A program made the position numbers and the translations under genes. A DNA stretch of 64,000 bases from Selaginella moellendorffii (lineage: Eukaryota; Plantae; Lycopodiophyta). Under the pieces are notes generated by a model. The model was not told the origin of the DNA, searched no databases, and was given only the letters and a program-made list of their open reading frames with translations. This document shows, piece after piece, positions 1 to 27,917 of this stretch (the first letter of the stretch is position 1; every line of letters begins with the position of its first letter). Location: the NCBI RefSeq assembly GCF_000143415.4, contig NW_003314405.1, positions 82,282 to 146,281 of the forward strand, given 5' to 3'.

Positions 1-87
1 AACTTTCTTGAGCTGCTTGTAGTCGCAGTACTTCACCCGCCACTCTGGGACGAGCTGGCTCTCCAGCTGCTTCTGGAACTTCACCAT
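1..87 (-). CDS. PHO1: 5' end of a PHO1-family SPX(-EXS) phosphate exporter (runs off the window)
   Basis: Manual translation from the ATG at 87 gives MVKFQKQLESQLVPEWRVKYCDYKQLKKV, the SPX N-terminus typical of PHO1 (MVKF.K....QL.PEW.....Y..LKK). Confidence 0.85.
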   Translation of the reverse strand, partial: MVKFQKQLESQLVPEWRVKYCDYKQLKKV

Positions 88-1083
88 GCCTGAAAGCTTG
101 GATTACCTGAGGCGAACATCGTCAAGAAAACGATCAAGCAAGAGATGAAATACCTGGAGGAAATGGTGTCAAGTTCAGAATGCCTCTTCAAACTTTTCTG
201 GCGCCTGTGCTCTGGAAGCAGAGGAAGAACAGCGGCAGTGAGCATATGACGAGACAAATGGTGGCGTGGAATCATCAAATGCATGGTGCTGGGGAGGAGG
301 AGCACCGATTCTCACAAGAAAACAGCGTCTTAAGATCATCTCTGGAGAAAAGGGGGAAAGCCTTCGTTTCTCGCCGAGGCCAACGAACAATTACTTAAGA
401 ATACGTTTTCCCGAGTGAAACTGACGAAGCAGAGTGCAAGAGGAGAGAAGAAGCAAGCGATCCATTGGCCTATGGAACAAAAAAAGGAAGCAAAAGGACA
501 GGGAATGCAGGGGAATCTACATGAAAAGAAGCTGTCATAAGTTACACACTTACACACACACAGCTCTCTCTCTCACACACACTTCAACTCTTTTCTTGTC
601 AACACGAGTAATTTATGCGAGCGAAAGGGAATGAAAGAATCATTTGAGCATCTAAAGCATGGAAGGAAGCGAGGCACGTACTCTTTCTGGAAATCACGCT
701 TATGGAACGTTTTTGTTTCGTCGGAGTGGCGCAACCAAACTGAAAGAATCACAAGCTCAGAACCACGAAAACAGAGGCAAAACAAAACAAGCTTACTCTT
801 GAAAGGGGACGAAGAGAAGAATAACCAAAGGAGCCAAGCTTGGATTCGAGAGAGTTTGTCGAGTTCTCGAGGTGAGAGCCCTTTGCTCACTCAAAAACTC
901 GGAGCCTTCTCTCCTTTGCGAGAGGAAGAGGGAGCGGGGGGAGTTTGCAATGAAGGTGGTGGTCGCATTTTATACTCTGGTTGGCCGACTAGAGACACTC
1001 AAGACATGGAAGAATAGTGGTGTGATAATTGCCCGACTATCATCAAAGGGGGTATAAGGGTGAGAACTTTGCTTTGAATCACT

Positions 1084-1105
1084 GGATATGCAGCTCGGGA
1101 TATGC
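1084..1105. promoter_or_regulatory. Tandem P1BS elements (GNATATNC, PHR1-binding)
   Basis: GGATATGC at 1084-1091 and again at 1098-1105, about 1 kb upstream of the PHO1-like ATG. Confidence 0.6.
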
Positions 1106-1934
1106 TGAGAGAAGTCCCCCATACCACGGAGAAAGAAAGAGAACGAAAATAAATGCATTTTAGCTTATCTTCCATTCGCAATGCTCCACCTTGTTAGTGG
1201 CCCGATTATACTTTTCCTTTTCCTTGCCAGATTCTGCACGATTCTTCGCTAAGAAAGCCAAAACTTCTGGCTGTAAAGCATTGCACGTACCAGCCTGTGT
1301 GTTTTTAACATTGATCCGCATCGTTTTGTTGACGACGTGGACCCCAACCCGCCGGGTTTTTTCTCCTTCCATTTGCTGTTCATCGAAAGCTTGCTGAGAG
1401 ACGCGATTTAAATCCAGAATACAAACCTCTCCGTTGCTACTGATGAGTTTGATCCCTGTCGTTCCGACCTGAGTGTGCCTGATTCTCGCTTTTGATCCTG
1501 ATGTCACCCTGTTCTACAGCAACCACCATGAATGGATGAGTATAAATGTGTAAACATACCCTCGTCTTGTCGCAAGTGACACTACCGTTTGGAGTGGATT
1601 ATTAAAGACTTGTCGATCATAGATGGAATGTACACGCGTGTGCGTTTGGATCCACATTCCATTCCATTAAGTGTAGAACTGGCTCCTTTTCAATGCGTTG
1701 TAAGTCGACCTCGACCATCGATCGTCGCAGTAGGGGCTCCACACTGGCCTGAGTGGGCATCTGTCTCGTTTTTCTTCACCATATATCAATCTCAGTAAAC
1801 CTGGAATATATTTGTATGCCACTGCACACACAGCAGCATCCACAAAATTAGATTCCAGAGCTGATAACTTTTACATGGTCACCTGGCCGATGACTCGTGC
1901 TTATTTTTCGCCTATCGTTGGCTGTGCCTCCTAC

Positions 1935-2985
1935 ATTAGGACCAAAGGTCTTCCCGCATAACCATCAAGCCACGTTTCGTAATACACTCGCATAAGGCAT
2001 GTCATCCTGTAAGAGAAGCAAAGCTGAATAACTCCACCAAAACAAAGCGATAAGAACGCCACCTTATATTGAAACACGGCAGTTGTCAAGCGATAATTCA
2101 GCTCTTCGTCTGGAATGCAAAAGAATAATGCATATGACTCAGAAAGAACTTAACGTACCAGTTCGCTAGCACTTATCAAACTTGACAACCCAAGTAACGT
2201 CCCCAACCTTCGTCGCACGAATTCGATCAACCTACATACAGAAGTTCTTTCCCCTGTGAATACCGTGGAGGGGACGTAGAATCTCAACGCTCCTACGTCT
2301 TCTAGTCCGCACGGAGTGACCAGCGTTGAGTCAGGGGCCTGCCAGCCATTTCATTGCTGAAGCATCCAAAACTACTAAACACGAGGAACTTACCATTGGC
2401 CTTTTCAAGTGTTCAAACACCTCATGGGAGCTTTCAACCTCGCCTCATAACCATCTCACACAGTAGCACCACTTCACGTCAGATCAACCATCCAGCAGTG
2501 AGCTGGCTCCAGTAAGTCGGCATCCCTGTGCGAAACACAAGGATCAAACTTGAACTCTCGGATAGCTTGTAAGATTCCTGAAGCCCATCTTTCAGTGGCA
2601 CGAAAGATCAGCGCCTCTGCCAAAGATCTCGAAAGCTGCTCAAGGGAGAACCTCCCTTTCCTGTCCTCCACTGTATATGATTTTACCATCCAACTGGAAG
2701 AAAAAAAAGAAAAAGGATTAGATCACAAAAGCTTTGAACGATCCTCTAAAAACTTGCCCCACTCATTCAATCTCTTCAACAGTGTCTCCACAACCCGAGG
2801 AGCCTCTGCCTTCTTCAGCTTGAAGCTGACTTTGTGAGGTCGCTGTTCTGTTAGTTCCTACAGGAAAAAAAATAAAAAAAGCCAGGACGAGATAGAGAAA
2901 AACGTTGTAAACACAAACAAAGAGAGGATATGGAATCTTTCTACCTGGAACGTAAGCTCTGGAAACTTGGAAGTCTCAAAGAAAT
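1935..2985 (-). pseudogene. SPP: Sucrose-phosphate phosphatase pseudogene fragment (5'-truncated, internally deleted, introns retained)
   Basis: Exons translate to TSKFPELTFQ / ELTEQRPHKVSFKL / RATERWASGILQAI / WL*GEVESS / GKNFCM*VDRIRATKVGDVTWVVKFDKC* / ETWLDG. These are SPP HAD and C-terminal domain motifs with in-frame stops. Confidence 0.85.
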
Positions 2986-3600
2986 ATGCAAAGATACCTT
3001 ATCAACTTATACTAAGAAATGTAGCATAATTATAATAAAAATAACATTCTGCCATAGCTATAACTATATAGAGGACGTTTGATTTATCATTGCCTTGTCA
3101 AATAGCCTCAAAAATCAATATAATCAATGATTTATTTTAAATGCCCTAATAGTCTCTGTTAGATAAAATTAAAAATATAGATATACTTCAATGTAAAATA
3201 CCTTTGTAAATTCATACTGTTTTATTATCTAAGGTTATAAGATGGATATTAAAATATTTGTCTTCTGATCACCTTTTTTTCCCAATTTTAGTTTTCATAT
3301 TGAAATGTTGTTAATATGAAATCATTTGATTAGATTTTCCTTCACTTAGATTATTAAGCATTCAACACTGAAATAAACTTGGAATATTAGAATAAATATG
3401 AAGAATATTTTAGAGCAATAATATAAACTTACCTCATCAACTTCTGCTACAAAATAGAACCCAATCATATTAAAGACATATAGTAATAACTATATAAAGC
3501 ATATTTATTTACCTTCTTTTTGCAAAACCACCTCATAAAAATATAGATTAATGATCTGCTTTAGAATAGTATTTGTTAGATAAAACAAAAAACTTAAATA

Positions 3601-6600
3601 CTAAATACCTTTACAAACCCATATTTTTCTTCCCTCTAGGATTATGGGATGAAGAGCAAAATGTTTTTCCATGATCGTCTCCTGCTTTTCTTCTTTCTCA
3701 AATTTAGTTGTCACTAGCTTAAATATTTCTTGCACATCTTCTGCTTTGGGATTTGTAGTTAGCTTGCTTTTGAGAAGACATGCATCCAAAAAGCTTATAA
3801 AGCTTCCCTTGGTCTCATCCACCATTGCATTCACTATTTCTCCAACACCAGCAAAATGTCCTCCAACTTTAGCCCCAATAAATAATAGGATCAATGTATA
3901 TTTAAGTACTGGAGCAAATTTCTTGAGCCAATTTGGTGGGAGATCCAATTCAACACCTTTAGAACTCTTCACTTGATGACCTTTAGTTCCCTGAGTATAA
4001 GTTCCTCCAGGCCATTCACACAAGTAATGAAGTTTAACATGTGTTCCCAGTATTTTACTGTAATTTTTCCACCTGTTATTCTCATCAAGAATATATGGAT
4101 ATTTTGGGCAATCTGTCTCCAATTTCAATAATACCTGCAAACATGTTGTATGGATTGTATTCACTTTTTCCATGGTAAACTTGAGTTCATTCTTGAGCTT
4201 GTTAATGCTTACTTCAATGTCATCAAGTTTCATATCCACCTTATCAAAACGGTTCTCCATTTTATCAAACTTCTTATCAAAATATCTGAAGAATGCATTG
4301 AGATTTGGGTCTTCAATGTTTGGAAACTCAACAACATTTGATGGTGCTTTGGGAATTGTGACTTCTCCAACCTCCTCATATTCCTTCAAGAGTTCACGAA
4401 GTTCAACAAGCTTATTCACCACTTCATATTTTTGCTCATTGGGCATCAATAGCTTAACCAAAGCATTCTCATCTGAGACCTTCAAATCATTATTCACATC
4501 CCAGCTCTCTACTTCATGTGAATAATTCCAAGTGTGGGAGTATTCTAGACCTCTTTCTTTTGCTTCACATTTGACTTCTTTTAGTGGACAAATAACTGAA
4601 GCCCATAATTCTAGTTTGTCCCCCTTATTTAGTATCCTTCTCCATACATAACCACGTCTCATCACATTTTCTTCAATTTCCAAAGATGGGCAATCCTCCA
4701 TACATACCCCAATAATGCAATTTCTAATTTTTTCCATCCATCCTTCAGCTTCTTTTTCCAAATCTGGCCTTGGTGCATTCTCTACCTCTTTTGGGTAATA
4801 GACGATGACATCAACCCATTGCCTATCTTTCCAATTGTCTGTGTCTCCCCCAACTCTCACAATTGTCTCGATAAGGTTCTCTTTCAAAGCCACCCATCCA
4901 TTCCCAGGCCTAAAACCTTTCTTGCTTAATTTGTGAAGTTTAACTTGGATCTTTGTGAAAATACTTGCAGGAAACAATTTCAAGTCCTTGTCTTTGCATT
5001 CAAACCTCCTGCCCCAGTAGTTGTGGTTTTTTTGAGTGTCAATTGACAATAAATATCCTGGAGGTGAATAGTCTTCTTGCAATAGTGTTGGCATTATCAA
5101 CTCTTTGGGCAAGTTATGCCAATTCCCATCCCATGTATCATCCCAAGGCAATATCACTCCCATCTCATGGAGCACTCCAAGAATGTACTCCACTATTTTG
5201 TCTTGGTTCCCACATTGTTGCTTCAACTGAAGTTTAACTTTATGTGTTTCCATTTGACTTTTGAGTTTGCTTGTCTCAGGATGTATGAAGAGTTGCACCA
5301 CATCCTTGATAAACCATTGGACATCTAAGATGACAAATTGAGACACAATGTCGTCCTCTTCATGTCCCAAGCCAAAGTAAATTGCATCACCAGAATCATG
5401 TAGAAATTGCAAGACGAATTTGAGAACATTCTTGGAACTCCTGTGAGGCAAGAGGATTTTGCCAACTTTATCTAGGGGTATGACCTTCTTGTGACTTGGA
5501 TCTTGTACCAATTTCCTCTTTGCTTTGAGACATTCCCGTGGTATTTGTTGGGCTGACAGCAGTTCTTTCAAGCAACTCCCCAACATGGTTTTTATCCCCC
5601 TTAAATCTTTCACTTGAGTGGCCACCACCTCAAAATAAAGATCTATCCCAATCTCAAGTACTTGCCCATAGCCTTTGTCGGAGATTATTGCAGAAACCAC
5701 GTCCTTTGGGGCAAAGTCGGGTTCTGGAGTGAAAAAGTTCGAGGCAATCAAGACCCTGGGCTTCCTTTTGGATGAGGCTGACTGATGTGAAGCAATGAAC
5801 CTCAGCCAATAAACCAAATTCTGCTTGAAAACCTCACAATTGCCATCCTCCACCTTGCATACGATCAAGAAGAGATCCTTCTCACTTCCTCTGAGAAAGT
5901 ACTGGTGGAAAGCATGGAACTCTTCCTGTCCAGCCAGGTCGCAAATGAGCAGCTTTTGTTTGGTGGTCGCATAGACAAGTGGTTGCAGCTCAATGCCTGC
6001 TGTTGAAGCATGCCTTTGGAGACATGATGGAAACCAAGACACTCTGCGGCAGAGGTTTTTTTTTATTGTGGTCTTTCCAACCCTGCTAGCACCACACAAG
6101 AAGAGCTTTGCTGTTGACGGGTTGTCAAAGTCTTTGAATGCACTCTGCTGGAAGATTGCATTCCGCTCTAAAAGACCAGAACACCTCTGCTTGAATGCTT
6201 CAGAACCACGGCCTATCTCAAGCAATTCCACGATCAGGCTTTGGTAGTTTTCCTCCAGGGCAGCCAGAATTTGTCTTTTCTGTGCATCGCTATCAAGAAA
6301 AGGAGCCCTGAATCTGCGCACCTTGCATTTTGGATCCCCCAGCAACTGGCAAAGATCCTCCAGTTTTTCAATTTCTCCCTGACGTATTTTTAAGTCTTCA
6401 ATGCTGCTTCCCAAAAGGCACCTCCATGGCAGTTCCGAGTCACATGACAAAGCTTTCAGATACTTGCAGCTGCTGATAGCTTTCCAAAAGAGCTCCCCAT
6501 TCGTGATTTTGCAATACCATATACCCAAATGCTCCAGTTGGCTCTTCTCTATGCCCTCGGCAAACTCCAACGTTAACTCATCTTCTCCCTTGCTAGCCCA

Positions 6601-7977
6601 TATTTTCAAATGGCGCAGCTTACAATGTGGACTTGAGAGAGCTGACCACAGACTGCTGTCACCGACCATTCCTCCTCCCTCGTTGGGCGGAAAAAGTACA
6701 AGATTGATCAGCTTGCAATTGGAATTTTGTAGCGCTTTGCCCAACCATCCACCACCATCACCTGGATAAAGAGTAACGCGGAGTTCCTCCAAGCCACACT
6801 TAGCGCTGCACAGGGCCTCACCCAGGCCCGTTGCATTGCTCAGGTCCTCACTCTGTCTCATTTCTCGGCAATGTAAAACTGACAGGCTGGTGCCCTCCTG
6901 AAGAGCCTTGCATACCCATGGCAACACTCCAGGATCACTTTTCCGATCCAGGTATAGTCTTTGCAGTGAACAGTTTGGACTCGTGAGTGCCTTGAAGAGT
7001 GCTTCACCTGCCTCCTCTGGAAACAGTGCCACCAGTACCACTAGCTTATTGCTAATGCCATGCTGAAATGCCTGTTCCCACCCTTCCTTGCCAATGTCCG
7101 TATCAACGATGGATAACTCTTCCACCTTGCACTCCTGACTTGCCAGATCCCTACTCAATTTCCCAAATCCTTCCACTGTCATCCTGTTCCCCTTCAATTC
7201 GAGATGTTTCAAGTTGTTTCCTGCTTTCCTAAGGAGTTGGCTAAGTAGAGCCTCTGGGTTCCGAACATTGCGCAAGCAGAGCTCTGTCAAGCAGTCGAGC
7301 TGAGCAAAGACCAACTCAAGCTCCTGAGTTGGTGTGAGGATGTCTTCGCCTATCCACCAGATTTGTAGCCCTTTTAAGACTTTGAATTCCTCTGTCATCA
7401 TCAGCTTTGCAAACCTCTGCACCTCAATCTGGCGAATATCCTGTCCCTGCTGAGGAGGAGCAATGCCCTCTGCCACCCTTTGCATTCGATCACTGGGAAT
7501 GCCCAACCTACAAGCGACCCTGGCAGCGAAGTGGATGAATCTGATGTCGAGCTGTGGTACCAAAGCGGCCTTGAGAATGTCAATGTGAGCAGCAGCAGCA
7601 GCAGACGAACTGCCATCACCAGGAGCATCTCCCACATCCAGAGCCCCGTCTAACCAGTGTGGGTTTGAAATGTACCAGTTGAGCACACCAATCAGATCCT
7701 CCTCTGTGCCTCCAAACCACTGGACGGTAGCACTCACCTCATCAACAAACTCACCTTTGGATGTGTCAAGCGCCTCCAGCCTCCAGATCTTCCCACAATA
7801 AAACCGAATCGCATTGAAGTGCCGCTTGTTGTCCCGCTTCGCTGCGAGAGCCTCCTTGATCTCCTTGACAGAATGACAGGGGATCCACTCTCGTCGCTCC
7901 TCCTCCATGGAAGTTTGCCCTGGATCGAAGGGGCAGTGGAGAGCACGAGTAAAAAGTGAACTTTGCCAGCAGTGCAT
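3601..7977 (-). CDS. Intronless TORNADO1-like LRR-Roc-COR (Roco) protein, 1458 aa
   Basis: RI-type LRRs (ALSSPHCKLRHL, ALTSPNCSLQRL); P-loop GASRVGKTT; STAGIE; DLAGQEEFH; COR-like region; coiled coil; TRN1-like C-terminus (KLHYLCE...KKFAPVLKYTLILLFIGAKVGGHFAG). Confidence 0.88.
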   Translation of the reverse strand: MHCWQSSLFTRALHCPFDPGQTSMEEERREWIPCHSVKEIKEALAAKRDNKRHFNAIRFYCGKIWRLEALDTSKGEFVDEVSATVQWFGGTEEDLIGVLNWYISNPHWLDGALDVGDAPGDGSSSAAAAAHIDILKAALVPQLDIRFIHFAARVACRLGIPSDRMQRVAEGIAPPQQGQDIRQIEVQRFAKLMMTEEFKVLKGLQIWWIGEDILTPTQELELVFAQLDCLTELCLRNVRNPEALLSQLLRKAGNNLKHLELKGNRMTVEGFGKLSRDLASQECKVEELSIVDTDIGKEGWEQAFQHGISNKLVVLVALFPEEAGEALFKALTSPNCSLQRLYLDRKSDPGVLPWVCKALQEGTSLSVLHCREMRQSEDLSNATGLGEALCSAKCGLEELRVTLYPGDGGGWLGKALQNSNCKLINLVLFPPNEGGGMVGDSSLWSALSSPHCKLRHLKIWASKGEDELTLEFAEGIEKSQLEHLGIWYCKITNGELFWKAISSCKYLKALSCDSELPWRCLLGSSIEDLKIRQGEIEKLEDLCQLLGDPKCKVRRFRAPFLDSDAQKRQILAALEENYQSLIVELLEIGRGSEAFKQRCSGLLERNAIFQQSAFKDFDNPSTAKLFLCGASRVGKTTIKKNLCRRVSWFPSCLQRHASTAGIELQPLVYATTKQKLLICDLAGQEEFHAFHQYFLRGSEKDLFLIVCKVEDGNCEVFKQNLVYWLRFIASHQSASSKRKPRVLIASNFFTPEPDFAPKDVVSAIISDKGYGQVLEIGIDLYFEVVATQVKDLRGIKTMLGSCLKELLSAQQIPRECLKAKRKLVQDPSHKKVIPLDKVGKILLPHRSSKNVLKFVLQFLHDSGDAIYFGLGHEEDDIVSQFVILDVQWFIKDVVQLFIHPETSKLKSQMETHKVKLQLKQQCGNQDKIVEYILGVLHEMGVILPWDDTWDGNWHNLPKELIMPTLLQEDYSPPGYLLSIDTQKNHNYWGRRFECKDKDLKLFPASIFTKIQVKLHKLSKKGFRPGNGWVALKENLIETIVRVGGDTDNWKDRQWVDVIVYYPKEVENAPRPDLEKEAEGWMEKIRNCIIGVCMEDCPSLEIEENVMRRGYVWRRILNKGDKLELWASVICPLKEVKCEAKERGLEYSHTWNYSHEVESWDVNNDLKVSDENALVKLLMPNEQKYEVVNKLVELRELLKEYEEVGEVTIPKAPSNVVEFPNIEDPNLNAFFRYFDKKFDKMENRFDKVDMKLDDIEVSINKLKNELKFTMEKVNTIHTTCLQVLLKLETDCPKYPYILDENNRWKNYSKILGTHVKLHYLCEWPGGTYTQGTKGHQVKSSKGVELDLPPNWLKKFAPVLKYTLILLFIGAKVGGHFAGVGEIVNAMVDETKGSFISFLDACLLKSKLTTNPKAEDVQEIFKLVTTKFEKEEKQETIMEKHFALHPIILEGRKIWVCKGI

Positions 7978-8034
7978 ATGCCAGCTGTAGTGTAAGAGTT
8001 AATTTAGGAATTAAACGGAAAGGACAAGACCATA

Positions 8035-8580
8035 AACAAACATAAAATGATTCCATTTGGTGGATTTTATGACACGCTGAGGGAAGAAAGGTCAGCTGTT
8101 TCAGCAGTGTAAATGTTTAATATTGAATTTTTGACACAGGTACTTCAATGATCTTTAAGTGTGGATTTAGACAATTGTAAGGTTTGTTTCTGTCCCTCAT
8201 CGTTCTTCCTTGTTTTTTAACAACGAAACTGATTTCCTTTTGCAGTGGCAAAGCTTCCTGGCCTTCAGCTAGAACTGGTTTTCAGCTTGCTGTTTATTTA
8301 GATGAGATATTTGTGCGTGTTGTCCACAAGAGACGAGCCATCTTGTTTGGCGGTGTAGTTGATACTGATGATAAAGGTTTGAATGCATGTGTTGGTCATC
8401 AGAAAAACTAATGATTTTTGCCTGCACAGCGTTTTTATGAACGAGATGTATGCGTTCCAGGTGGACAATCGCAGATGGTTTGTATCTCATCGATTTTTAT
8501 GAGATAAAAATTATCTAAACACCATCGCTCGCAGGTATCCTTTGGAGCTTCGCAAGCCAAAGAGCCTAAAGATTAAGGTA
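8035..8580 (+). pseudogene. Kelch domain-containing protein 4 (KLHDC4-like) pseudogene fragment
   Basis: Exon pieces FGGFYDTLRE / YFNDL* / SWPSARTGFQLAVYLDEIF joined directly to VHKRRAILFGGVVD / FMNEMYAFQVDNRRW / YPLELRK. Has a stop and an internal deletion; no start. Confidence 0.8.
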
Positions 8581-8777
8581 CGGCAATCCGAGATTGTGTA
8601 GTGGTCAAGTGTGCATCCAAAGCAGAAGAGCGTACCAAACCTTCCAAAGAGCGCAGCAAGAGTGATCTCTGAAAGTTATAGCTGAAAATTAAATGAATAG
8701 ATTACAGTTATTCTCGGAGGCATGGTGTCCTTTTCTAGAGGCAATGCCATTGACACGAAACCGCTAGTATACAATCT

Positions 8778-10145
8778 CTATCTCTCGTCGTCAATGGTGA
8801 TAGAATTTTGCCTTTGCTCCTCCGAAATCTTGGATTTCTTGGAGGCCGGTTCAAGGCACTCGGCGTCTGACGAGACGCTAGCTGCAGCCTCGGTTACTGT
8901 CGACTGCGGCGCTGCTGGAGCAGCCTCCTCTGGCTCCTTCTTGCACTGCTGGTTCACCTCAACCTTTTGCTGGAACTCAAACATGTTCTTCAAGTTCTTC
9001 GCTTGTGCTTCAATTTGGAGCTGTAATTGTCGTTGTAGCTGGAGAAAGAACAGGACCCGGAGTTTTACACTGGAAAGAAGAAAGGGAAAACGTTACCTCC
9101 AGCTGTGCGTGTAGTTGCTTCTGTACTTCTATTTGCACCCTCAGTGCCCTGCCATAGCAAGCAACAGAGAAAGAAATAAGGAACAAGTACTAAAAAGAAA
9201 GAAACTTCCTCCAAGAGCTTACGCGTCAAAGTTTGGAGCAGTGTTTCTCTTCTTCTCTGGTTTTGCTGAAACACAAGCACAAACACGGGTTTAGTCATAG
9301 CATGAACTATTCATGTCCGGACGAAAGCTACCTTCGCCATAATTTGGAATGTCCTTTACGAGGCGATACTTCTGCAAACAAAAGCTTGACGCTTTGGAAT
9401 GAAAGCTCAATGCACAAAACACACCTGGAGGTGGCTTTTGACATGGAGAATGTTTATCCCCTGCACGTCCATGACTGTCAAGATAGCCTTTGGCGTCGCT
9501 TCTATCATCAAAGAAAAGAAAAAACACATCAGAGAATGGATGGGTGGGTGGATGGATGTATCAAAAGTACTTACTTTCAGCGCCACCGAGCTTGCTCACA
9601 GCATCCACAAACCGCTCGTGTAGCTCCGGAGTCCATCTCAAACGCTGCTTGAGCATCGGTGAGGTGGTCAAGGCAGCAGTGCCAGCGGACGTCGATGGCT
9701 GGCTCGCAAATCCAAGAGCGTTTGACGGCATGTCACTAGCCTCCTACACAGAACAAAGCTCTCGATCGATCACAAACAAGAGAAAACAAGGAGCTCATAC
9801 CTGTGGCAGGCCACCATTCTGGCTGGGAAAGCCATTCCAGCAAGTGGCAATGATGTCGTCCTCTGGAACAAGCTCCGCCTCCGCCCAAGTCGGCCGCTCC
9901 GAGCCAAGTGGAAAATTCTCGCCCGGATTGGAAGAATCGTCCGGGAAGCTTAGCAAGGCCTCCAATTCGGCCTCTTGCTTGAGGGCGGAGAGGTGCTGGG
10001 AATTCAAAGGCAGCGACGCGGGGAGATTACCCGCGTAGGGCTCGGCCGGAATCGTCATCGGCGGCGCGAAATAGCTGGATGGAGCAGCTCTGGAAGAATT
10101 CGCGTAGGCTCCCGCGAGATGATGAGATTGCGGGAATGCATCCAT
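8778..10145 (-). CDS. PHR1/PHL-like MYB-CC transcription factor (multi-exon)
   Basis: [55 protein letters not shown] across GT-AG introns; coiled coil ALRVQIEVQKQLHAQLE-LQRQLQLQIEAQ. Confidence 0.9.
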
Positions 10146-10341
10146 AGCTCTGCGTCGAATTTCCGGTACCTTTTCTCTCGGCGCGCTACCTCGCCATCGC
10201 CATCGCCATCGCCTCCTCCCTCTAAACCCTAAAGGGAGCTAAAAAAGCTCCAATTGTCCACTGGCGCGAATCGACGGCCCAGATTCCATCAAATCGACGG
10301 ATTCATATTCTACCATACAGTTAATTACCGTGGCAAAAATT

Positions 10342-12215
10342 TTACGTAGCTCTCCACCAAGGACTGCTTGCGTGGAAGCTAAAGTTACTTTGTGAGCTTT
10401 CTCGATCAATCGGTTCTTCGTCCACCAGGAGGATATCGATGGTTGTGTCGCCAATCCACGAAATGGACGATGCCTGGAGGCCGATCGCTAGCTTGGGAGC
10501 GCTGGATCCATGGTGAAGGATCCATCTCTCTTCTCGCTCTTCGCTCCACTGGCCATCGTCTCGAAGAACCGGATCGATCGCACGGTTTTGCCGACGAGCA
10601 ATCGCAGCTGGGATGTAAATCGTGTCGCCGAGAATGGGAGCTCCGAGAGCAGCGAATTGAGCTCGAACCTGAGAGTTAAAAAGCTTGGTCTGTATGTCGG
10701 AGAAGAAAAGAGAGAGCTGTATAGAACCTGGTGTGTTTTTCCGGTGAGAAGTTTTACTTCGCATTCGTAAGCGTGACCATCGTGCTCCAACTCGCAATTG
10801 CTGACACCATTCTCGCGTAGTCGTGCCTCCGACGGCCATTCTACTTGGTGGCATTGCAAGACTTCCATCGAGCACAAGTGCCATCCTTGGCGTTTGTCTA
10901 CAAAGGTGATTACTTAGTAGCAGTCTCTGGCATGGTTACTACGATACCTTGACTTAAAAGATGAGGAGCGAAATGATCCGGCCGCATGTAATGGCTCACG
11001 ATTCCTAGCGGAACTGGGAAAGCCGCCAGAACAAGGTACCGTTTGTCCACCTTTCTAGTCTGTTTTTTTCCAATCTGTTAAGCTCGGAATCGAGAAAAGA
11101 TAAAAGTTTTCAATCTCAGACCCGTAGCAGCCGATTGAAGTTCGAGACGAAATCCTTATCCTTGGCAAGAACGACACTACGCCAGCAGGAAAAAGAAAAC
11201 TTTTTGAGAAGAGAAAGCAATGAACTAAGTAAGTTTGCAAAGCAAACCTTTACCATCCTTCAGTGCAGTTGTCAATCTGGTGCGTAACGAGCAGAGGAAA
11301 CGCCATGCCAAGTGCTCGAGATGCAAAAGTGACACACGATTCCTCCAGATTATCAACACTGCCTCCAACCTGAATGAAACTTTCTTTCACGAATCCATTC
11401 TAGATGAGAATAAAAAAAAATTCACATACCGACACACCAGCTGGTTTGTCCAAGACCACAAAGAGATCATTCTCGGCCAGGATCCTGGATTTCCAGTCCA
11501 CTTCATAGCATCTAACCACAAAGAAAACACGAGTATAAACAAGAGAGAAAAAGCAACCAGCCAGAGTTTCTTGCCTGGGAAAACGCCGGGGATGGACGTG
11601 TACTCGCATGTAAGAGCCAGCCTCAACTTCTTCGTGCTTACTCACGATTCTTCGAGCCTTTTGTGATTCCTGGACCGACATTCCTTTCACGCGAGGCAAA
11701 TCCATAGCCAGAGCTCTCTTGTAAAACTCCATATGCTCCTTTGGAGCGGTCTCGGGCGGCTCGGAGCATCGCAGCGCATGGTAGACAGCTCCAAACTCGA
11801 TCAAATCATTCACATATCTGCACAAACGCGAGAAAAGAATAAAGTTACTCACGCAATGATACGAAGAACAATGCGTGCTACTCACAGAGATGGCAGTGAC
11901 AAAGCCTGGCAAAGGTAATCCACCACATTCCCATTCTTTTCCACGAAGAGATGCTCGATCCGCACTGGGAGATCATCGCCAGGGCAAGGGAGGAGGCGAT
12001 CGTAGCAGTAGCTCTCTGGCCTGCTCCAGAAAGAGATCGATTTCAGCTATCGTTGCGCTGCCATGATGCAAAAACTCACATCGATCGATCCATACCTCGC
12101 CTTGGCGACACGGACGCGCTGCTTCTTCCAGATGAGATCGTGGCGCCGCTTCTTGAGCGGCACATCGCACAGATCCCTGGCGCACGCGCGCAAACCTAAA
12201 AAATGGAAGCGCCAT
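10342..12215 (-). CDS. RluA-family RNA pseudouridine synthase (PUS6-like), copy A, multi-exon
   Basis: RVHVHPRRFPR-CYEVDWKSRI, VVLDKPAG, catalytic HQIDNCTEG, VKLLTGKTHQ-VRAQFAALGAPILGD; N-terminus MALPFFRFARVRQGSVRCAA. Confidence 0.88.
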
Positions 12216-12347
12216 AGCGCACAAGACGAATCTATTGAGAAGAATGCCATCTCTTTTAAAAGAGCCCATAGAAAACTAAGTCCAAAGTATACACCACCAA
12301 GAACATCGATGATTCGGAAAAAAATTTCTTCGAATTTACAAACCTCT

Positions 12348-13974
12348 CTACTCGCTACAAACTCTCAAGAATTGCTCCGCTGCCCACGCTTCTCCAGGTT
12401 GCAACACCACCTTATCAAGCTAGACACACACGAATTCCAGAATTCCAGAGCGAAAGAAATGGATGAATCGAATCGAGCAAAAACTTACTTTGGCATTCTC
12501 GACGCAGACGAAGTTCAAGTAGGATTCCTTCAAAGTCAGGTATGGATTCCAGAGCACTGCGTCCGTCCACCTGAAGTTTGCGAGATTTGAGAGGCCAAGC
12601 TCAAGAAAAAAAAAAGGACTCGTAAGTTACGTACCCTTTGTTTCTGATCGAGATGGTATTGCCGAGGCCGTTTTCCAGTATCACTTCTCTCGGGGCATTC
12701 AAGTACATACAATCGTAGAATCCTGAAAACGTTATCTCGTCCCTGGAGAAGAAAACATCTTAGAGAAGTATCATAGCGATGATCAAAAACGAAAAGAATA
12801 AAGCGATATCACTACCTCTTCTCGACACCGGGTGTTGGATTCTTGGGATCGGGGTCTTTGTTCAGAGTTTTACATCCTTTCAAACCTTTGATACACACAT
12901 CACCAATGGCTGCCTGGAAGTTAAACTTAGTCCTCCACAAGCCAAGCAAGTAGGATAGAAGCTTACGTGAAAGTAGTTGTGGAGAGCTGTGGTGAACGAG
13001 AATTCTTTGTTGTCGACATTTTTTACATGAATGTGTGTTTTGAGAGCTTCCGGCTCTAGTGTAACCTGAAAAGAAAGCGGGAGATCATAAGTCCCAATGC
13101 TCTAGATCAGTGGAGAAAAAGACACCTTATACTCGATTTTGAAGTCGCAGTCCCACATGTTGCGGCTGTAATCGGAGGGCCCGAGCTCCAGAGTAACGGA
13201 GGGACAGCCGGAATAGTTTTCAGTCGTCGACAACGTCCATGGAACATTTCTCGCGAAACCATGCTGTTATCGAAACGATTCATAGATAAGCGAAGCGTAA
13301 GAAAAGCATGCACACACCTGTTGCATAACACCTGGTCCAAACTGAGGAAAACAATGAGGGATCCCACCACTACAAAAGAAAAAATTCGCAAGTCATCAAT
13401 CACTGCTCGAGAAGCTTGAAAACTCGTCACCTGATTGGCTTCGTTCCATCAAAGACCGCATCTGGCCTCACGAAGAGCAGCTCGTCTCCAGAAACAGTTC
13501 TCCACGAGGTGATACACGCTCCAAAAAGATAAATCTCTGCAGTGCTGGAAGAAGAAAAAAAACGAAAAAGTTGTAGAAAAAAATCCAAACGCGAGTAAAA
13601 ATCACTACCTTCCTTCAGAGCTACACAGCACTACCTTCGGAAGATCCCCCAGACCACTCTCAACCTCAATGCCTTTGATTCCAAAGTGTTTGTTCATGCT
13701 TTCCACTTCCGAAAATCTAGACAAACAAAAAGGCACGCGGTCATCGGAGCTGAAAATGCAAATCTTTTCGCTGGAGCGAAAAGCAAGCCAAATCCCCAGC
13801 CACATTCTCGCGATGCGATCTCTAGAGAGAATCTTACTTGGATCGCGCAACCAGCGCATTGGCACGGCGCGCTCTCGCCGCCGATGGCACCGCAAACGCT
13901 CTCCGCTGCCATCGATCGCCAAACCCTAGCGGGCGTAGCGCCGGCGCCGAGCACTTTGGGGCCACCCCAGCCAT
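12348..13974 (-). CDS. Putative plastid glucose-6-phosphate 1-epimerase (aldose 1-epimerase family), multi-exon
   Basis: Transit-like MAGVAPKCSAPALRP...; AEIYLFGACITSW, LLFVRPDAVF, GIPHCFPQFG, HGFARN, ALHNYF, VLWNP, FVCVENA. Confidence 0.85.
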
Positions 13975-14119
13975 CGTCCTCCTCTCCAGAGTAGGGCATC
14001 TCAAGTCAAATTTCAAAGCATATTCTTCAAACATCCCTAAGCTCTAAGTGTTTCAAATGATCTTCCAATGTTTCATTGAAGATTAAAACATTATCAATTA
14101 TAAGAATAAAGGATAAATT

Positions 14120-15403
14120 TCAACGAAGGAACTTTGCAGCAACACTTTTTGCTTCTCCAAACATGTGTGCTGCTTTTAAACAATGGATTGCCCCCATGCA
14201 CGTCTCATAGTCTGGGTTATCCACCAGCAGAAACGAGAGTAGAAGACTCATAGGCACAAAACACTTATCCTTGCGCATAACTCTGAAGGGTGTGAAGAAT
14301 TCCTTACAACATAAAGGATAGACCCGGTAATCACCTGATGCAACCAAGCTCTCAAAAAACTCTTGTATTTGTGATTTTTCATATCTGATCCTCAGACTCT
14401 TCATAACAATTGCAGCCTTTTCATCGTAATTTCCAAATTCCATGAGCAGTGCAACAGCATCAGGCACCCAGTGAGACACCACTAATTCAAACACACATTC
14501 TGTGACATCCAAGTCGTCAACTTCCATGGCATTCGTTCGCTTTACTTCCTTCACCACCTTCATTGCATTGTCAAAACTCCCTTTGCAGCAATGCTTTAGC
14601 ACTAACCTGTAGCACTTTGGTGTTGCTGCAACCTCACATTCATCCGCCATTGCAAGAAACAGATGAAACGACTGGGATGGAGCAGATGTTATCAACTTGT
14701 CATACAGCTCAACTGAAGGCTTGTACCCAAAAGACTTCATTTGCTGCAGTGCTTTTGTAGCCTTTTCTGTCGAAGAAGATGCCATCTCTATGATGATCTT
14801 CCCGTAGATAGTCTCCTCCGAAGTAGAATCGCCAGCCTCCACTATTAAACTCGTAGCCCTAGCCATCTGTGAGGGATCCTCTCCCACTAACCGGGCTGCA
14901 AATCTGATTGCGTTCAGCTTCAAGCCTTTTGACCGTGCCTCTCTCACAAAAGCAAGAGCCTCATCACAGCTTTTACACATGTTTAGCATGTAGTCATATA
15001 ACCTTGTTGCCCCAGCCTCATCGCCTCTCATGAAAAAATCAATCTCGCCTCTCGCCTCCGAGAACAAATCAAACGCCATCTCTCGTGATAAATTCCACTC
15101 CGTTCTTGCTCTCTCAAACAACCTAAGGTTGCGTTTGTAGCTAAGGGCCTTCATTTGCTTTAGCACGTCCCTTGCGTCCCTTGCATACATAGCAGAAACC
15201 TCCTTCGGCAAGCTAAACAACACCATCTCAAACGTTTGAGAATCACATCTTTTGTTGAGATTTACCAAAGCTGTCCTAAACCATCCGGATTTCACCAAAT
15301 GTTGTACCACTTCCTGGCGATAATATCCCTCTGTAGCTCTGTCAATTTTAAGGAGATCCTCAGGCGCCAGATACTCCATCACCAATAACAAAGCCATCTT
15401 CAT
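14120..15403 (-). CDS. Degenerate P-type PPR-like helical repeat protein, 427 aa, intronless
   Basis: PPR-like units such as YGKIIIEM...KALQQMKSFGYKPSVELYDKLI and CYRLVLKHCCKGSFDNAMKVVKEV. Confidence 0.6.
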   Translation of the reverse strand: MKMALLLVMEYLAPEDLLKIDRATEGYYRQEVVQHLVKSGWFRTALVNLNKRCDSQTFEMVLFSLPKEVSAMYARDARDVLKQMKALSYKRNLRLFERARTEWNLSREMAFDLFSEARGEIDFFMRGDEAGATRLYDYMLNMCKSCDEALAFVREARSKGLKLNAIRFAARLVGEDPSQMARATSLIVEAGDSTSEETIYGKIIIEMASSSTEKATKALQQMKSFGYKPSVELYDKLITSAPSQSFHLFLAMADECEVAATPKCYRLVLKHCCKGSFDNAMKVVKEVKRTNAMEVDDLDVTECVFELVVSHWVPDAVALLMEFGNYDEKAAIVMKSLRIRYEKSQIQEFFESLVASGDYRVYPLCCKEFFTPFRVMRKDKCFVPMSLLLSFLLVDNPDYETCMGAIHCLKAAHMFGEAKSVAAKFLR

Positions 15404-15476
15404 AGTAGGGTAAATATTCTCACTATCAAAAGTTTATAAAAGTTTATTTATAATCTTAAGCTAAATTAGAGCAATG

Positions 15477-17429
15477 CTATGGAAAAGTTTCTTGGCGATC
15501 CAACTGCTTTGCCTCTGCCTCTAAGCCCAGCTCCACAAAGGACATGAGGAAATAGACGTAGAGGAGCGCTCCAACCAAGAGCAGCCCCACGAATGAGCAC
15601 ACCATCCAAAACACGATCCACTTTGGAGTGATCTGGATGCTCGAAGTGGTCGTCACCAGGAAGTAGATCTCGTTGGACCTCTGAAGAACAGTCCCCGAGG
15701 TGGCCAACTCGGGCTCCGTCTGGATGTCTCCGATGCTCTTGTAGAGAGCAAACATGCTCCACATTGCAGCTGTGCAAATCACCACTCCCCGGATCCCTGT
15801 TCGAAAGAAGTGCATCCCAATCCTCCGCTTCACCCAGTCCTTGAAGTCCGCGGCCCAGTCGAGCACCATGTCTTCCACGTCCTGGAGCTTCTTGCTCAGC
15901 ATCCCGGCGACGGTGAGGAGCAGTGCCAGCAGCGTCGTCACAATCTCGATCGAGACGTCCGACCTCTTGGACGAGCCTTTCTTCCACTCCCGCTCTCCAA
16001 CCCGTTTCACGTCCGCCACTCGAGCAAAGGCTTGGAGGTTCTTGAGCAGCAGCTCCGCTTCTTGCTTGGTCTTCACCTCGTCCAGCCCCAGCAGGCAAGT
16101 CTCGCGATCGATCTGGCCACGCTCGATCCCGCAGTGCACGTCGTCCGTGACTTCCACTGGCACTTTGGCTTCCAGAGTGTCTAGAATCGCTCCCTCGAGG
16201 ATCCGCTGCTGGTACTTCTCGAAGACGCTGGCGCTCTTCTTAATCGCCTCGAGAACAACTTCGCCTGGTCTCGAGCAGAAGCTCAAGAGAGCAGCGCCGT
16301 CTTGAGCACCTGGCTTGGTTTCCCGCTGCTGCAGCCACCCGTGGACACAGTCATCCACACGCTTCTGTGCCTCGAGCATCTCTGACACGTTGAAAGTCAC
16401 GTTGATCCCCAAGTGTAGATCCCACCGGGAGCTGTACGAGAAGTAGACGATCGAGACGAGGACATCGGCTATTCTCGGTTCTCCCCAGAAAGAGTTGCTA
16501 TCCTCGCAGCGGCTGGAGTTGAGCTTCACGCGCAGATCTTCGTCCGAAGTCGAGCTGCCGGTGATGTTTAGTCCCACGAAGCAAACCGAGCCCTTGCAGG
16601 CACACTGGTGGCTCGGGAACGCAAGGTACGAGATGATGTCCGGCGTGTAGACGATCGGTGTGGACTTCTTGCATGGCTTGCCGGAGTAAATGTACTGCCA
16701 GTAGCGTCCCTTGTCGACCCGGTCGTTGATCATCAGGCACTGGCTTGTTCTCGCGTTCCCAGCAAAGTTGCTCAGGTAGCTTCCATGCTTGGCATAAGGA
16801 TTTCTCTCCTGGTACGGGTTGGCCGAGGCTCTTCGAAACGGGACCGCGGACATGAGCAGTGCAAATTCGCCTTCTTTTCCAGTCCAGACGATTGGAGTCG
16901 TCCACAGGCAAGAATTCTGCAGAGGATCGGTGGTGGTGAAGCAGATTCGGACACTCATCCCCCAGTTGATGACCATAGTCCATATCCAGCTGCTGCTTTT
17001 CCGAGCTATGACCCCTCCCAAAACGTGTGGATCCGGCGAGTTGTAGAAGAAGCTGGTGTTGTGCCGTGTCATATTCCCGGCAACTCGCCATACACTCGCT
17101 CGCTGGTAACCGAGAGTAGCACGCTCGATCGGAAGGTCTTTGAAAGCAGATGGTAGCGACGTGCTGGCGATCCATTTGTAGAACGGGTCGTAAGTGGTGG
17201 CAAAGAAGTTTGTTTCCCAGCAAGTAGAGCCTTCTTCCTGGATCAGATCGCTGTAAAACTCTGGCGCGAGGCTCTGAGCTCCAAAGAAGCGTATTTTGCC
17301 GAAAATCATCACGGCTACTGCTGCACAGAGCGCGCCGACCATCACGAGAGCCGCCACTATTTTATCCTTTCGTGACAGCCACGTCCGAAGATTTGTTGCT
17401 TGCCTTTTCATGTTGTCATTGGAAGCCAT
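15477..17429 (-). CDS. Orphan membrane protein, 650 aa (one N-terminal TM, large Cys-rich loop, three C-terminal TMs)
   Basis: Long GC-rich intronless ORF. Hydrophobic segments IVAALVMVGALCAAVAVMIFG, IVTTLLALLLTVAGML, GVVICTAAMWSMFALY, WIVFWMVCSFVGLLLVGALLYVYFLM. Several N-x-S/T sites. Confidence 0.75.
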   Translation of the reverse strand: MASNDNMKRQATNLRTWLSRKDKIVAALVMVGALCAAVAVMIFGKIRFFGAQSLAPEFYSDLIQEEGSTCWETNFFATTYDPFYKWIASTSLPSAFKDLPIERATLGYQRASVWRVAGNMTRHNTSFFYNSPDPHVLGGVIARKSSSWIWTMVINWGMSVRICFTTTDPLQNSCLWTTPIVWTGKEGEFALLMSAVPFRRASANPYQERNPYAKHGSYLSNFAGNARTSQCLMINDRVDKGRYWQYIYSGKPCKKSTPIVYTPDIISYLAFPSHQCACKGSVCFVGLNITGSSTSDEDLRVKLNSSRCEDSNSFWGEPRIADVLVSIVYFSYSSRWDLHLGINVTFNVSEMLEAQKRVDDCVHGWLQQRETKPGAQDGAALLSFCSRPGEVVLEAIKKSASVFEKYQQRILEGAILDTLEAKVPVEVTDDVHCGIERGQIDRETCLLGLDEVKTKQEAELLLKNLQAFARVADVKRVGEREWKKGSSKRSDVSIEIVTTLLALLLTVAGMLSKKLQDVEDMVLDWAADFKDWVKRRIGMHFFRTGIRGVVICTAAMWSMFALYKSIGDIQTEPELATSGTVLQRSNEIYFLVTTTSSIQITPKWIVFWMVCSFVGLLLVGALLYVYFLMSFVELGLEAEAKQLDRQETFP

Positions 17430-18442
17430 CTTCGAGTAGCAGTGTTGATCGCTTGAGGAATAAGCTAGGGAGAAAAGGAGAAATATGAGGACCAGACAAA
17501 AGCAAGTGAGAAACTAGTCTTACTTTGTGAGAAGCCTCGAGAAGTGAGAGTTTTCTGGCTGGTTCAGAGTGTACACTGCAAAACAGATGCGAGAAGGAAA
17601 GTGAGATCGAGAGTTCTGTAAGAGATGAGTTTTATACGAGCACCTTAGGAAGAACCACTGCAGCAAGGGAGCATTATTGCTAGTCATCTTCGAAAACGTG
17701 GCTATAGCTTCCTTGCATGGAAACCATAGCTGTATAGAACGTATGTCCTCTAGCTTTGAGAACCATACAGAAGCAAAGTACCTGTAGCATTTTGGAAAAT
17801 CATTGCAGTAAGATCATCCAGGGCCGCGAAGCTTACTTCTTTTAAGAAATTAACGACAAGGGCCATGTCGCCTTCGAATTTCCACTCACGAGTGAGTACC
17901 TGGGATATTTTTTGACAATCCATCCAGCCTATGGATGAAGGGACCTGCTACACTGGAGACCTGGCATCCACTACCAAACCATCAATGTCAGGTATTGATC
18001 ATCCAAGAGAAAAGAACACCAAAAACTCGCCTGGAATTGTTCCACAAGAGCCAGAACCAGGATTGTAGGCGAGTTCCTGACTTCCTGTTCATAGAGGCAC
18101 CAAGCCAGGGGTTTTTTCTTATAGCAATGCGCTTACCTCTCTAGAAAGCTCCATGAGACGAGCCACGAAAATGTATGCCCTCCATTTGATGATGCTAGTC
18201 GCAAGAAACATGGGAGGATTTTGCAGCGCGCCTTGATAATCCAAACCACGAGCCTGCGCTGCCAAATCGATCATCTTTTCCCTCCTGCGAAGAGATCATC
18301 TAGAGTAAGAACCCTAGAACGCGAAAGCGGGAAAATGAAAACCCCGATACTGCCAGGATTCGAACCCACGAAATCTAATACTCAGTAAAATTTTAATTCT
18401 GGCATATTCGCAAGATATGCGCTAGGGTTTTTGGAGAGGTTT

Positions 18443-21637: not shown

Positions 21638-23183
21638 ATGGAAGCAGGGGCGATCCTTCGAGCGCCTGGCGTGGATTTGAGCCGCCAGGGAGTCGATAGA
21701 TCCACGGCGGCACTGCCTAACAGAGGTATGCTCGGAAATTTCGATTCTTTGCGCGAGATTTCAAGAAATGCGCGTGGCTGGAGTGTAGGATCTCTCGCGT
21801 TTCCCAGGGCGCGGAGCTGGCGACCGAGCGCTGTGTCGAGCGAGACTACTGGGAATATCGATTCCAGAGCGCAGCCACGGCCGCAATGCTTAGAACACAA
21901 TCGCGATGGTAATGACAAGAAAATCACAAGGGGAGTTTATGCCCAAGAACTGGAAGTGGCTGCTCGAGCTGTGCAGCTGGGTTGTATGCTCGCGCAGCGT
22001 GTCCAGGAGAGAATTCTCCGGAAAGAAGAGAATGCCGGTTCCAAGGACGATAAATCGCTCGTCACAGTCGCAGGTAATCCATTGCGCGAAAAATTCTTCT
22101 CGTTTGAGCTCATTCTCTCTGGCTGTTCTTGCTTGTTCTAGACTGGGGAGTCCAAGCAGTCGTTAGCTGGGTGCTCTCCCAAGCTTTTGGAGAGGAGGTA
22201 TCGATCATAGCCGAGGAAGACACGAAAGGCCTGAAAGGAATGAATGGAATCCAGACGCTCCAGCGGGTCGTAGCAGTGGTGAATGAGTGCCTGTCCCAAG
22301 CCTCGGTGGTCGGTCTCACTCCTCCATCGCGCAAGCTCGGGACGATCGAGGTACTCCGAGCTATCAACAAGGGAAACTCGGAAGTTCGCTCCAGCAGGAG
22401 CTGGGTCTTGGATCCCGTGGATGGAACTCTTGGATTCGTGCGTGGCGATCAGTATGCTATTGCTCTGGGGATGATCGAAGACGGCCGAGTGGTGCTGGGA
22501 GTTCTCGGCTGCCCGAATTATCCGATGAGACCGCAGTGGTTGAACTATCACCAGAAGTACTACCGACTTGCCAGTAAGATCGCACCACCACCACCGGGAA
22601 AATGGCACAAAGGCTGTGTTCTTACCTCTGCGAAAGGAGCTGGACAGGCATGGATGGAGCCCCTGGTTTGGAACTCGGATGGCTCTTTCTTGCTGAATCC
22701 TCCTCGAGTGGTAGCAGTCTCTCCGGTGGATGATCCAGCGCAAGCTACTTTCTGCGAGCCCGTCGAGAAGGCCAACTCAAGCCATTCATTCACGGAAGGA
22801 GTTGCTGACAGCCTTGGCCTGAGGTACGCGAAAGTCTTTCTCTGCGAGCGGCAAAAACTAACTTTTGTCTCCCTGGCAGGAAACGTCCGTTACGGGTCTA
22901 CAGTATGGCGAAGTATGCAGCAATTGCTCGTGGCGACGCGGAGATCTTCATGAAATTCGCAAGAGCGGGTTACAAGGAGAAGATCTGGGATCACGCTGCC
23001 GGAGTGTTGATAGTGGAGGAAGCCGGGGGAGTGGTAACTGACGCTGGCGGTCGGCCTCTAGATTTTTCAAAGGGACGGTATTTAGAAGGGCTGGACAGGG
23101 GGATCATCGTGAGCTGCGGGACGGGCCTGCACAGGAGAATTATCTCAGCAGTGGACGCGAGCTGGAATTCGTCCAAGCTGTGA
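21638..23183 (+). CDS. 3'(2'),5'-bisphosphate nucleotidase, HAL2-like (AHL/SAL family), 3 exons
   Basis: [50 protein letters not shown]; introns at about 22074-22141 and 22824-22879. Confidence 0.92.
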
Positions 23184-23344
23184 CAGACAGGACGGCGGTC
23201 TATGGAAACACGCGTCTTTAGATGATGAAGAAAATGGAAGAACACTTGGCCCAATGAGGAGAAGACACGCTGCCTTCGGAGGTTCGTGACAGATACATAA
23301 GTTGTGTTTGTCCTCGAAGGATCGTCACTGATTTCTGGTTTCCA

Positions 23345-23647: not shown

Positions 23648-23705
23648 TTGTCAGGAGTTTCTGATGTGAATAGGAAAACTCTACTCACCTCCTCGAAAGC
23701 TTTTG

Positions 23706-27874: not shown

Positions 27875-27917
27875 ATCAAATGTCAACTCTAAGATGTTGT
27901 CCTAGCACTTTTTCTGC

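Follow-up and report, generated by a model that had tools for sequence, protein, structure and literature searches.

An expressed LRR-Roc-COR gene from a variable Selaginella moellendorffii family: a candidate receptor outside the TORNADO1 lineage

Is a lycophyte gene that combines leucine-rich repeats (LRRs) with Roc and COR domains a developmental scaffold or an immune receptor? The gene considered here lies in a 64,000-nt stretch of Selaginella moellendorffii DNA (contig NW_003314405.1, positions 82,282 to 146,281; hereafter the window, in whose coordinates all positions are given). It appears as a single unbroken open reading frame (ORF) of 1458 codons at 3601–7977 on the minus strand, and no second copy of this ROCO gene was found within the window. 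The ORF product matches, at 100% identity, the 1435 amino acid (aa) NCBI entry ‘ROCO family protein [Selaginella moellendorffii]’ (P0001). An earlier annotation made from the letters of the window (the sequence-only reading) had proposed a diverged, lineage-expanded ROCO paralog acting as a GTPase-switched immune sensor. On balance, we favor a closely related explanation: an intracellular receptor, most likely an immune one, in which a variable surface is joined to a Roc-COR switch and a C-terminal output domain that is conserved.

LRR variability in a clustered ROCO family

The window gene belongs to a family of closely related copies. A word search retrieved seven Selaginella proteins at 82–90% identity, followed by P0009 (43%), P0012 (36%), and fern proteins; the Selaginella ROCOs comprise seven close copies and three more distant ones. 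P0002, P0003, P0005, P0007, and P0008 are encoded on scaffold GL377608, with three located at 1.47, 1.55, and 1.61 Mb. The genes for P0001 and P0004 lie on GL377709 and that for P0006 on GL377737. Several of these loci share repeated neighbors (EIN3/SPX-type and Kelch/DUF4110 gene models), which indicates segmental duplication.

Sequence variation among the copies is concentrated on one predicted face of the LRRs. An AlphaFold model of aa 1–600 (pLDDT 80, pTM 0.75) contains 15 strand-helix repeats across aa 180–565. Foldseek searches with this model returned NLRP9, NLRP5, NLRP14, NLRP3, and ribonuclease inhibitor (E 1e-11 to 1e-9; 1e-11 for NLRP9 and NLRP5, 2e-9 for ribonuclease inhibitor), and the LRR of NLRP5 is the best sequence match in the PDB (E 1.4e-5), in agreement with the ribonuclease inhibitor/NLRP-type repeats recognized in the sequence-only reading. 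In an alignment of eight copies, variability clusters around the beta strand of each repeat. When the exposed set is defined as the canonical xxLxLxx positions of the 15 modeled strands (75 sites), at least three residue types occur at 36 of the 75 exposed sites and at 18 of the 338 other LRR sites (odds ratio 16, Fisher p 5e-18). The ratio of nonsynonymous to synonymous change (dN/dS) was calculated pairwise by the Nei-Gojobori method for five copies; P0007, which has no gene on record, is not in the codon set. The values, approximate for recombining paralogs and from non-independent pairs, are 1.6–3.7 at exposed sites (dN 0.21–0.42), 0.7–1.3 in the rest of the LRR, 0.4–0.7 from Roc through COR to the C-terminus, and 0.5–1.9 in the N-terminal region, where changes are few. 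In a register-shift control, values were highest at the canonical positions and no more than background along the convex side formed by the helices. These data show an excess of amino acid change at the predicted exposed LRR face and purifying selection on the Roc, COR, and C-terminal domains. The check on exposed LRR residues suggested in the sequence-only reading therefore gave high rather than purifying values, and their confinement to exposed positions gives real support to the word ‘sensor’.

Comparison with the collinear partner locus points in the same direction. Over ∼18 kb, window positions 3–17943 and the P0002 locus (L003) are collinear; the two are haplotypes or else the products of a very recent segmental duplication. 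In 500-nt bins, identity is 98.4–99.8% in the flanks and 91.9–96% in the ROCO gene, with the lowest bins in the LRR and coiled-coil part. The excess divergence from this partner locus is confined to the ROCO gene. Along the coding sequence (CDS), the paralog nearest to the window gene also shifts: P0003 is nearest at aa 1–60 and 258–346, P0004 at aa 405–493 and 1163–1252, P0006 at aa 956–1192 (96–100% identity), and P0002 in most of the remaining intervals. The first 120 Roc codons are 98–100% identical in all copies. The gene is a mosaic of paralog segments, as expected from gene-conversion-like sequence exchange.

The same mosaic structure, together with low and noisy dS values, invites a different explanation, in which the family is redundant and decaying and the apparent selection is an artefact of relaxed constraint, gene conversion, and repeat misalignment between mosaic copies. 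Part of the family is indeed decaying: at the P0005 and P0006 loci the frame is interrupted (longest ORFs 858 and 1390 aa), and a fragmentary extra ROCO copy lies downstream of P0006 (L005:18240–21622), its pieces 88–94% identical to the window gene. However, relaxed constraint should bring dN/dS close to 1 everywhere, not to 2–4 at 75 sites set by the structure and 0.4–0.7 in 840 further codons of the gene. The window copy, moreover, keeps a 4.3-kb frame, the P-loop, switch II, and the C/H motifs described below, and is transcribed and spliced. We consider decay an improbable account of the selection pattern.

Evidence for transcription comes from RNA contigs of four small public runs, from four studies, aligned to positions 3001–8800. 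Two joints in these contigs are flanked by GT..AG on the minus strand. The first (3555>3609, in contigs of runs X1 and X9, from two studies) removes a 53-nt intron that, in the sequence, begins directly after AAG-G and closes with CAG. The second (3144>3201) removes a 56-nt intron from the 3′ untranslated region (UTR); the 309-nt contig that spans it matches the window without a single mismatch. Because identity to the collinear partner locus over this stretch is just 96.6%, the exact match indicates that the window copy itself is transcribed; spliced contigs thus speak against a silent gene, an outcome that the sequence-only reading had named as fatal to its proposal. The first intron also reconciles the genomic frame with the annotated protein. 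The frame ends WVCKGI-stop, as it does (VCKGI-stop) in five of five paralog loci fetched, and P0001 ends WVCKDH; removal of the 53 nt converts the former ending to W V C K D H stop, and exons 1 and 2 together give the exact P0001 translation. Translation starts at M24 of the ORF (window 7908), since MEEERR opens all paralogs and the open frame upstream of it differs in length from copy to copy. The gene consists of a 4.3-kb exon followed by a very short terminal one. The description ‘intronless’ holds for nearly all of the CDS, which occupies one exon, and fails for the CDS intron and the 3′ UTR intron. A 5′ UTR intron, suggested by a loose contig end at 7928, was not adopted because paralog homology stops there too; the source of that contig may be another copy.

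In our preferred explanation, the window gene is intact and expressed and belongs to a young family, specific to Selaginella, of presumably cytoplasmic LRR-Roc-COR proteins. The variable concave LRR surface of its product would bind a ligand that itself changes, in all likelihood a molecule derived from a pathogen or modified by one, and ligand binding would release the Roc-COR nucleotide switch. The C-terminal module, consisting of a long helix and a putative zinc-bound globular part, would then signal, probably by oligomerization or partner binding. The result would resemble a nucleotide-binding LRR receptor (NLR) with a Roc-COR switch in place of NB-ARC. We favor this reading because of the gene cluster, birth-and-death evolution, paralog exchange, gene-confined divergence, selection on the concave face, and conserved switch and output domains. 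The same combination is familiar from plant clusters of NLRs and receptor-like proteins in co-evolutionary conflict, and diversifying selection on exposed LRR residues, clustered paralogs, and sequence exchange are specifically shared with NLR immune receptors. By analogy, the features of the window gene fit receptors in such conflict. We infer the immune role, ligand, nucleotide, and output. A receptor for a variable non-pathogen ligand, serving for example symbiont recognition or the surveillance of endogenous mobile elements or viruses, would also be in keeping with the diversifying signature, but nothing specific to such ligands was seen and the adjoining genes are ordinary housekeeping genes; we regard this variant as having little probability.

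Several observations weigh against an immune receptor. The closest characterized relative, TORNADO1 (TRN1), is a developmental gene. Two of the family’s loci have broken ORFs, as described above. Recombination between paralogs and the non-independence of pairs blur the dN/dS estimates, and Fisher tests on single pairs are modest (p 0.016–0.053). The register of exposed sites, though it is the canonical xxLxLxx, was set after the variability along the alignment had been seen. A classical GTP switch is not assured, given a Roc G4 motif that lacks its aspartate. Finally, the RNA runs are in the form of contigs, from which expression level, strand, transcript ends, and pathogen response cannot be read.

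Relationship to TRN1 and other ROCO proteins

The naming of two Selaginella paralogs as ‘protein TORNADO 1’ at NCBI raises the question of whether the window gene is simply the lycophyte TRN1. An exhaustive search with aa 600–1458 against a 1.8-billion-protein set returned 282 proteins at E up to 0.001, 11 of them below 1e-30; ‘Protein TORNADO 1 [Ipomoea batatas]’ is found at only E 2.6e-6, over Roc, COR, and the C-terminus. Roc-COR trees were built from 102 rows by a quick method and from 47 rows by a mixture model and a careful method. In all of these trees, the plant proteins with the C-terminal domain form three clades. Clade A (support 100/99) contains all 11 retrieved Selaginella ROCOs, the window protein among them, with Adiantum proteins and some unnamed sequences. 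Clade B (100/100) contains liverwort proteins, and clade C (100/96) contains angiosperm TRN1 with moss, fern, and Marchantia paleacea proteins. Clades B and C group together (93/86). A word search with a fern protein of the TRN1 clade retrieved no Selaginella TRN1 ortholog. Because it falls in clade A, separate from TRN1 in clade C, the window gene is not a TRN1 ortholog. On these trees, it belongs to a lineage paralogous to TRN1 and at least as old as the vascular plants. The possibility that it is a single TRN1 ortholog, which the sequence-only reading had left open, does not agree with a multi-copy gene outside the TRN1 clade; the ‘diverged, lineage-expanded paralog’ of that reading does, with seven close and three distant Selaginella ROCOs.

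A protein paralogous to TRN1 might nonetheless do similar work. It could be a developmental or cell-signaling scaffold like TRN1 whose Selaginella copies arose by duplication, with sub- or neofunctionalization toward different endogenous partners behind the LRR changes. The two proteins share the order of ribonuclease inhibitor-type LRR, Roc, COR, and an unnamed C-terminal domain, as well as the C-terminal motifs LHxxCE, an invariant His, and a terminal WxCxx[H/C] (LHMLCE ... WICRRH in Ipomoea TRN1). TRN1 is known from patterning phenotypes only (PMC4104024), and purifying selection on Roc, COR, and the C-terminal domain would be in keeping with a scaffold. However, the window protein lies outside the TRN1 clade, and exposed-face dN/dS above 1, clustering, mosaic exchange, and partner-locus divergence make up the pattern of an arms race and not that of developmental scaffolds. 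TRN1 is also low-copy, unlike the hypervariable Selaginella family with its seven close paralogs and five members on one scaffold, and has THYD where the Selaginella protein has NFFT in G4. The additional N-terminal ∼176 aa of the Selaginella protein have no detectable counterpart in TRN1. We therefore think a scaffold role rather unlikely, and retain the receptor as the preferred explanation.

Outside land plants, there is a parallel in the LRR-ROCOs of brown algae (Ectocarpus and kelps). These proteins have an LRR-Roc-COR order, lineage expansion, and variable LRRs, and the expanded families have been proposed as immune receptors (PMC3341825, PMC11378527), which makes them, too, candidate non-NLR receptors. 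The algal genes are reported to diversify through LRR exon shuffling and alternative splicing (PMC3341825, PMC11378527). In contrast, the Selaginella gene carries its 15 LRRs in one 4.3-kb exon, and its diversity consists of point substitution and paralog exchange. The likeness to animal NLRPs and ribonuclease inhibitor is limited to the horseshoe of the LRR part: the Selaginella protein has a Roc-COR switch and lacks NACHT and NB-ARC, neither of which gave a Pfam hit at E up to 1. LRRK2 provides the best match among solved Roc domains (E 1.3e-5), and MFHAS1 has a similarly simple LRR-Roc-COR order (PMC4104024). The Selaginella protein lacks kinase, ankyrin, and WD40 domains, and has a degenerate G4 and a C-terminal domain different from theirs.

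The search also reached two proteins of LRR-Roc-COR-A-COR-B type, P0082 and P0066, whose contigs carry densely packed, bacterial-type genes. They share with the window protein the domain order, the C-terminal domain, and the motifs L[RH]xxCE ... WLCDxH, and differ in having LRR_8/LRR_4-type repeats, a length of about 1000 aa, and no N-terminal region. Bacterial ROCO contig L006 also encodes Peptidase_C14 and EACC1 domains nearby, and bacterial ROCO contig L007 encodes Pkinase-AAA_16, SIR2_2, and Patatin. Such domains are typical of conflict systems, and their proximity may be due to chance.

A review from 2014 restricted ROCO genes (Tornado1 proteins) among photosynthetic organisms to flowering plants (PMC4104024). 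Unlike that statement, several ROCO clades are found here in liverworts, mosses, ferns, and lycophytes; no paper on lycophyte, fern, or bryophyte ROCOs was found in the library searched. In Selaginella, one of these clades, not that of TRN1, evolves in the manner of a resistance-gene cluster. About two NLR genes have been reported in S. moellendorffii (PMC3782705). Should the ROCOs be receptors, they would mean that a plant with few NLRs has solved intracellular recognition independently, and would offer a tractable plant system for LRR control of a Roc-COR switch, a question shared with LRRK2.

The Roc-COR switch and the terminal regions

The central region has the expected domains. Roc matches Pfam PF08477 at 41.3 bits (cut-off 27). 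COR-A scores 32.2 bits, slightly below its cut-off of 35.3, and is present as PF16095 in the precomputed Pfam annotation of P0001; the COR region also aligns with relatives bearing COR-A and COR-B. With a modeled 61-residue helix, the Roc, COR, and coiled coil of the sequence-only reading are all accounted for. Within Roc, the G1 P-loop GASRVGKT, the switch I Thr, and the G3 motif DLAGQ are intact. G4, in contrast, is degenerate: the Selaginella protein has SNFFT where LRRK2 has THLD, the TRN1 clade TH[YF]D, and the retrieved non-plant ROCO relatives [ST]xxD. The guanine-recognizing Asp is absent throughout the lycophyte and fern clade and from most of the liverwort clade. To judge by these motifs, Roc likely binds a nucleotide, whereas its specificity for guanine is in doubt. 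The proposed ‘GTPase-switched’ action thus keeps its P-loop, switch I, and DLAGQ basis and becomes uncertain through loss of the G4 Asp.

The N-terminal region has relatives only in the seven close Selaginella paralogs. Its model is disordered at residues 1–50 and continues with seven helices at aa 53–177 (pLDDT about 50–80). Pfam gave no match to the 176 aa, and a profile of the N-terminal 180 aa did not match the corresponding parts of other clade members (probability 0.1%). This segment, ∼176 aa long, was rightly called unrecognized. Pfam searches with isolated N- and C-terminal parts, including those of Ipomoea TRN1 and a bacterial relative, returned chance coiled-coil hits only, and NCBIfam and PADLOC searches gave no match. 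An ESM Atlas feature search found nothing for the C-terminus and only weak LRR-like leads (below 0.9) for the N-terminus.

The C-terminal region (residues 1158–1435), in contrast, is widely shared. Ipomoea TRN1 aligns with P0001 from Roc to aa 1363, and a hidden Markov model (HMM) of the region found it in 85 of 186 proteins fetched, including P0082 and P0066. In a model based on 60 aligned sequences (pLDDT 78, pTM 0.68), the 61-residue helix is accompanied by a small sheet, a helical hairpin, and a terminal beta hairpin. Two residues are invariant across the alignment, the LHxxCE Cys and a His 14 residues downstream, and nearly every member has WxCxx[H/C] at or close to its C-terminus (WICRRH in TRN1, WLCDDH in the bacterial proteins). 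We infer a putative C-H-C-H/C zinc site from this conservation. The last residue of WxCxx[H/C] comes from exon 2, and splicing of the 53-nt intron would thereby supply the last ligand of the site.

No Pfam family covers the C-terminal domain. Foldseek searches of the PDB with the model returned nothing beyond coiled-coil matches, and VIA-align wide and second-look searches matched the long helix only (Z about 6; below 5). An ESM Atlas shape search retrieved only the C-terminal parts of other ROCOs (Streptophyta and Cyanobacteria; TM 0.44–0.48). Structure prediction followed by Foldseek, as the sequence-only reading had advised, was thus informative for the LRRs and not for the C-terminus. We make no claim of a new fold for the globular part. 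Having neither a Pfam family nor a solved structural match among those searched, the domain is a defined structural target.

The sequence-only reading had also placed a hydrophobic helix and a possible membrane-active function at the C-terminus. The helix exists in the expected sense: WLKKFAPVLKYTLILLFIGAKVGGHF is the most hydrophobic 19-mer in the protein (Kyte-Doolittle 1.56). It forms the first helix of the modeled helical hairpin (pLDDT about 78–91) and contains two lysines. Membrane insertion is not supported because the hydropathy is borderline, lysines are present, and the helix is modeled as part of the domain; a transmembrane reading was not adopted on these grounds, and the weak hydrophobic peak in the C-terminal domain of Ipomoea TRN1 (1.17) weakens it further. 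Nor is the C-terminal region peculiar to this protein, being common to TRN1 and bacterial LRR-ROCOs.

A broader scenario can be built on these domains. The ancient lycophyte and fern ROCO clade, unseen in the named seed-plant data here, might be the main variable intracellular immune repertoire of Selaginella, in which a Roc-COR of relaxed base specificity replaces NB-ARC and the putative zinc C-terminal domain, derived from bacterial LRR-ROCOs, serves as signaling or oligomerization module. We offer this scenario tentatively and consider it doubtful as a whole. New elements in the present analysis are the partner-locus comparison, the placement outside TRN1, the C-terminal motif with its completing intron, the degenerate G4, and the bacterial relatives.

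Feature coordinates and neighboring genes

Table 1. Features of the ROCO gene and its product, in window coordinates (aa numbered from MEEERR).
Feature	Position	Strand	Basis
CDS exon 1: aa 1–1433 and first base of codon 1434	3609..7908	-	starts MEEERR
Intron, 53 nt, GT..AG; takes out genomic ‘GI-stop’	3556..3608	-	RNA contigs X1, X9
CDS exon 2: completes Asp1434, His1435, TAA stop	3548..3555	-	sequence, translation
3′ UTR intron, 56 nt	3145..3200	-	309-nt RNA contig
N-terminal region, aa 1–176, no family match	7381..7908	-	paralog-only relatives; helix prediction
15 ribonuclease inhibitor/NLRP-type LRRs, aa 177–590, hypervariable at xxLxLxx	6139..7380	-	model, Foldseek, variability
Roc domain, aa 591–777	5578..6138	-	Pfam, motifs
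P-loop GASRVGKT	6070-6093	-	Roc motif
Switch II DLAGQ	5926-5940	-	Roc motif
Degenerate G4 SNFFT	5728-5742	-	Roc motif
COR region, aa 778–1157	4438..5577	-	Pfam, alignment with relatives
Conserved C-terminal domain, aa 1158–1433 in exon 1	3610..4437	-	alignment, HMM, model
Long helix of C-terminal domain	4126-4308	-	model
LHYLCE motif	4015-4032	-	alignment
Invariant His1311	within 3970-3984	-	alignment
Hydrophobic helix	3853-3930	-	model, hydropathy

Upstream of the ROCO gene, 82 nt at window positions 8452–8533 are replaced by the 13 nt ATGCTTTCCAGAT in contigs of all four RNA runs. By synteny with L003, this stretch is probably the 3′ part of the adjoining Myb-CC gene, and the replacement may reflect polymorphism or a difference in assembly.

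Directly downstream of the ROCO gene, an SPX-EXS (PHO1-like) gene occupies positions 1–2700 on the minus strand. At L001, L002, and L004, the ROCO genes are flanked by models mixing EIN3, SPX, or S6PP domains and by Kelch/DUF4110 genes, which suggests a repeatedly duplicated segment, possibly with chimeric gene models. Two further minus-strand ORFs in the window, of 650 aa (15477–17429) and 427 aa (14120–15403), have no Pfam match at E up to 1; the counterpart of the 650-aa ORF in L003 is an annotated gene without Pfam hits. The neighbors at 22129–35530 comprise an inositol monophosphatase-like ORF, a UDP-glycosyltransferase, a PPR protein, and a polyubiquitin with five repeats.

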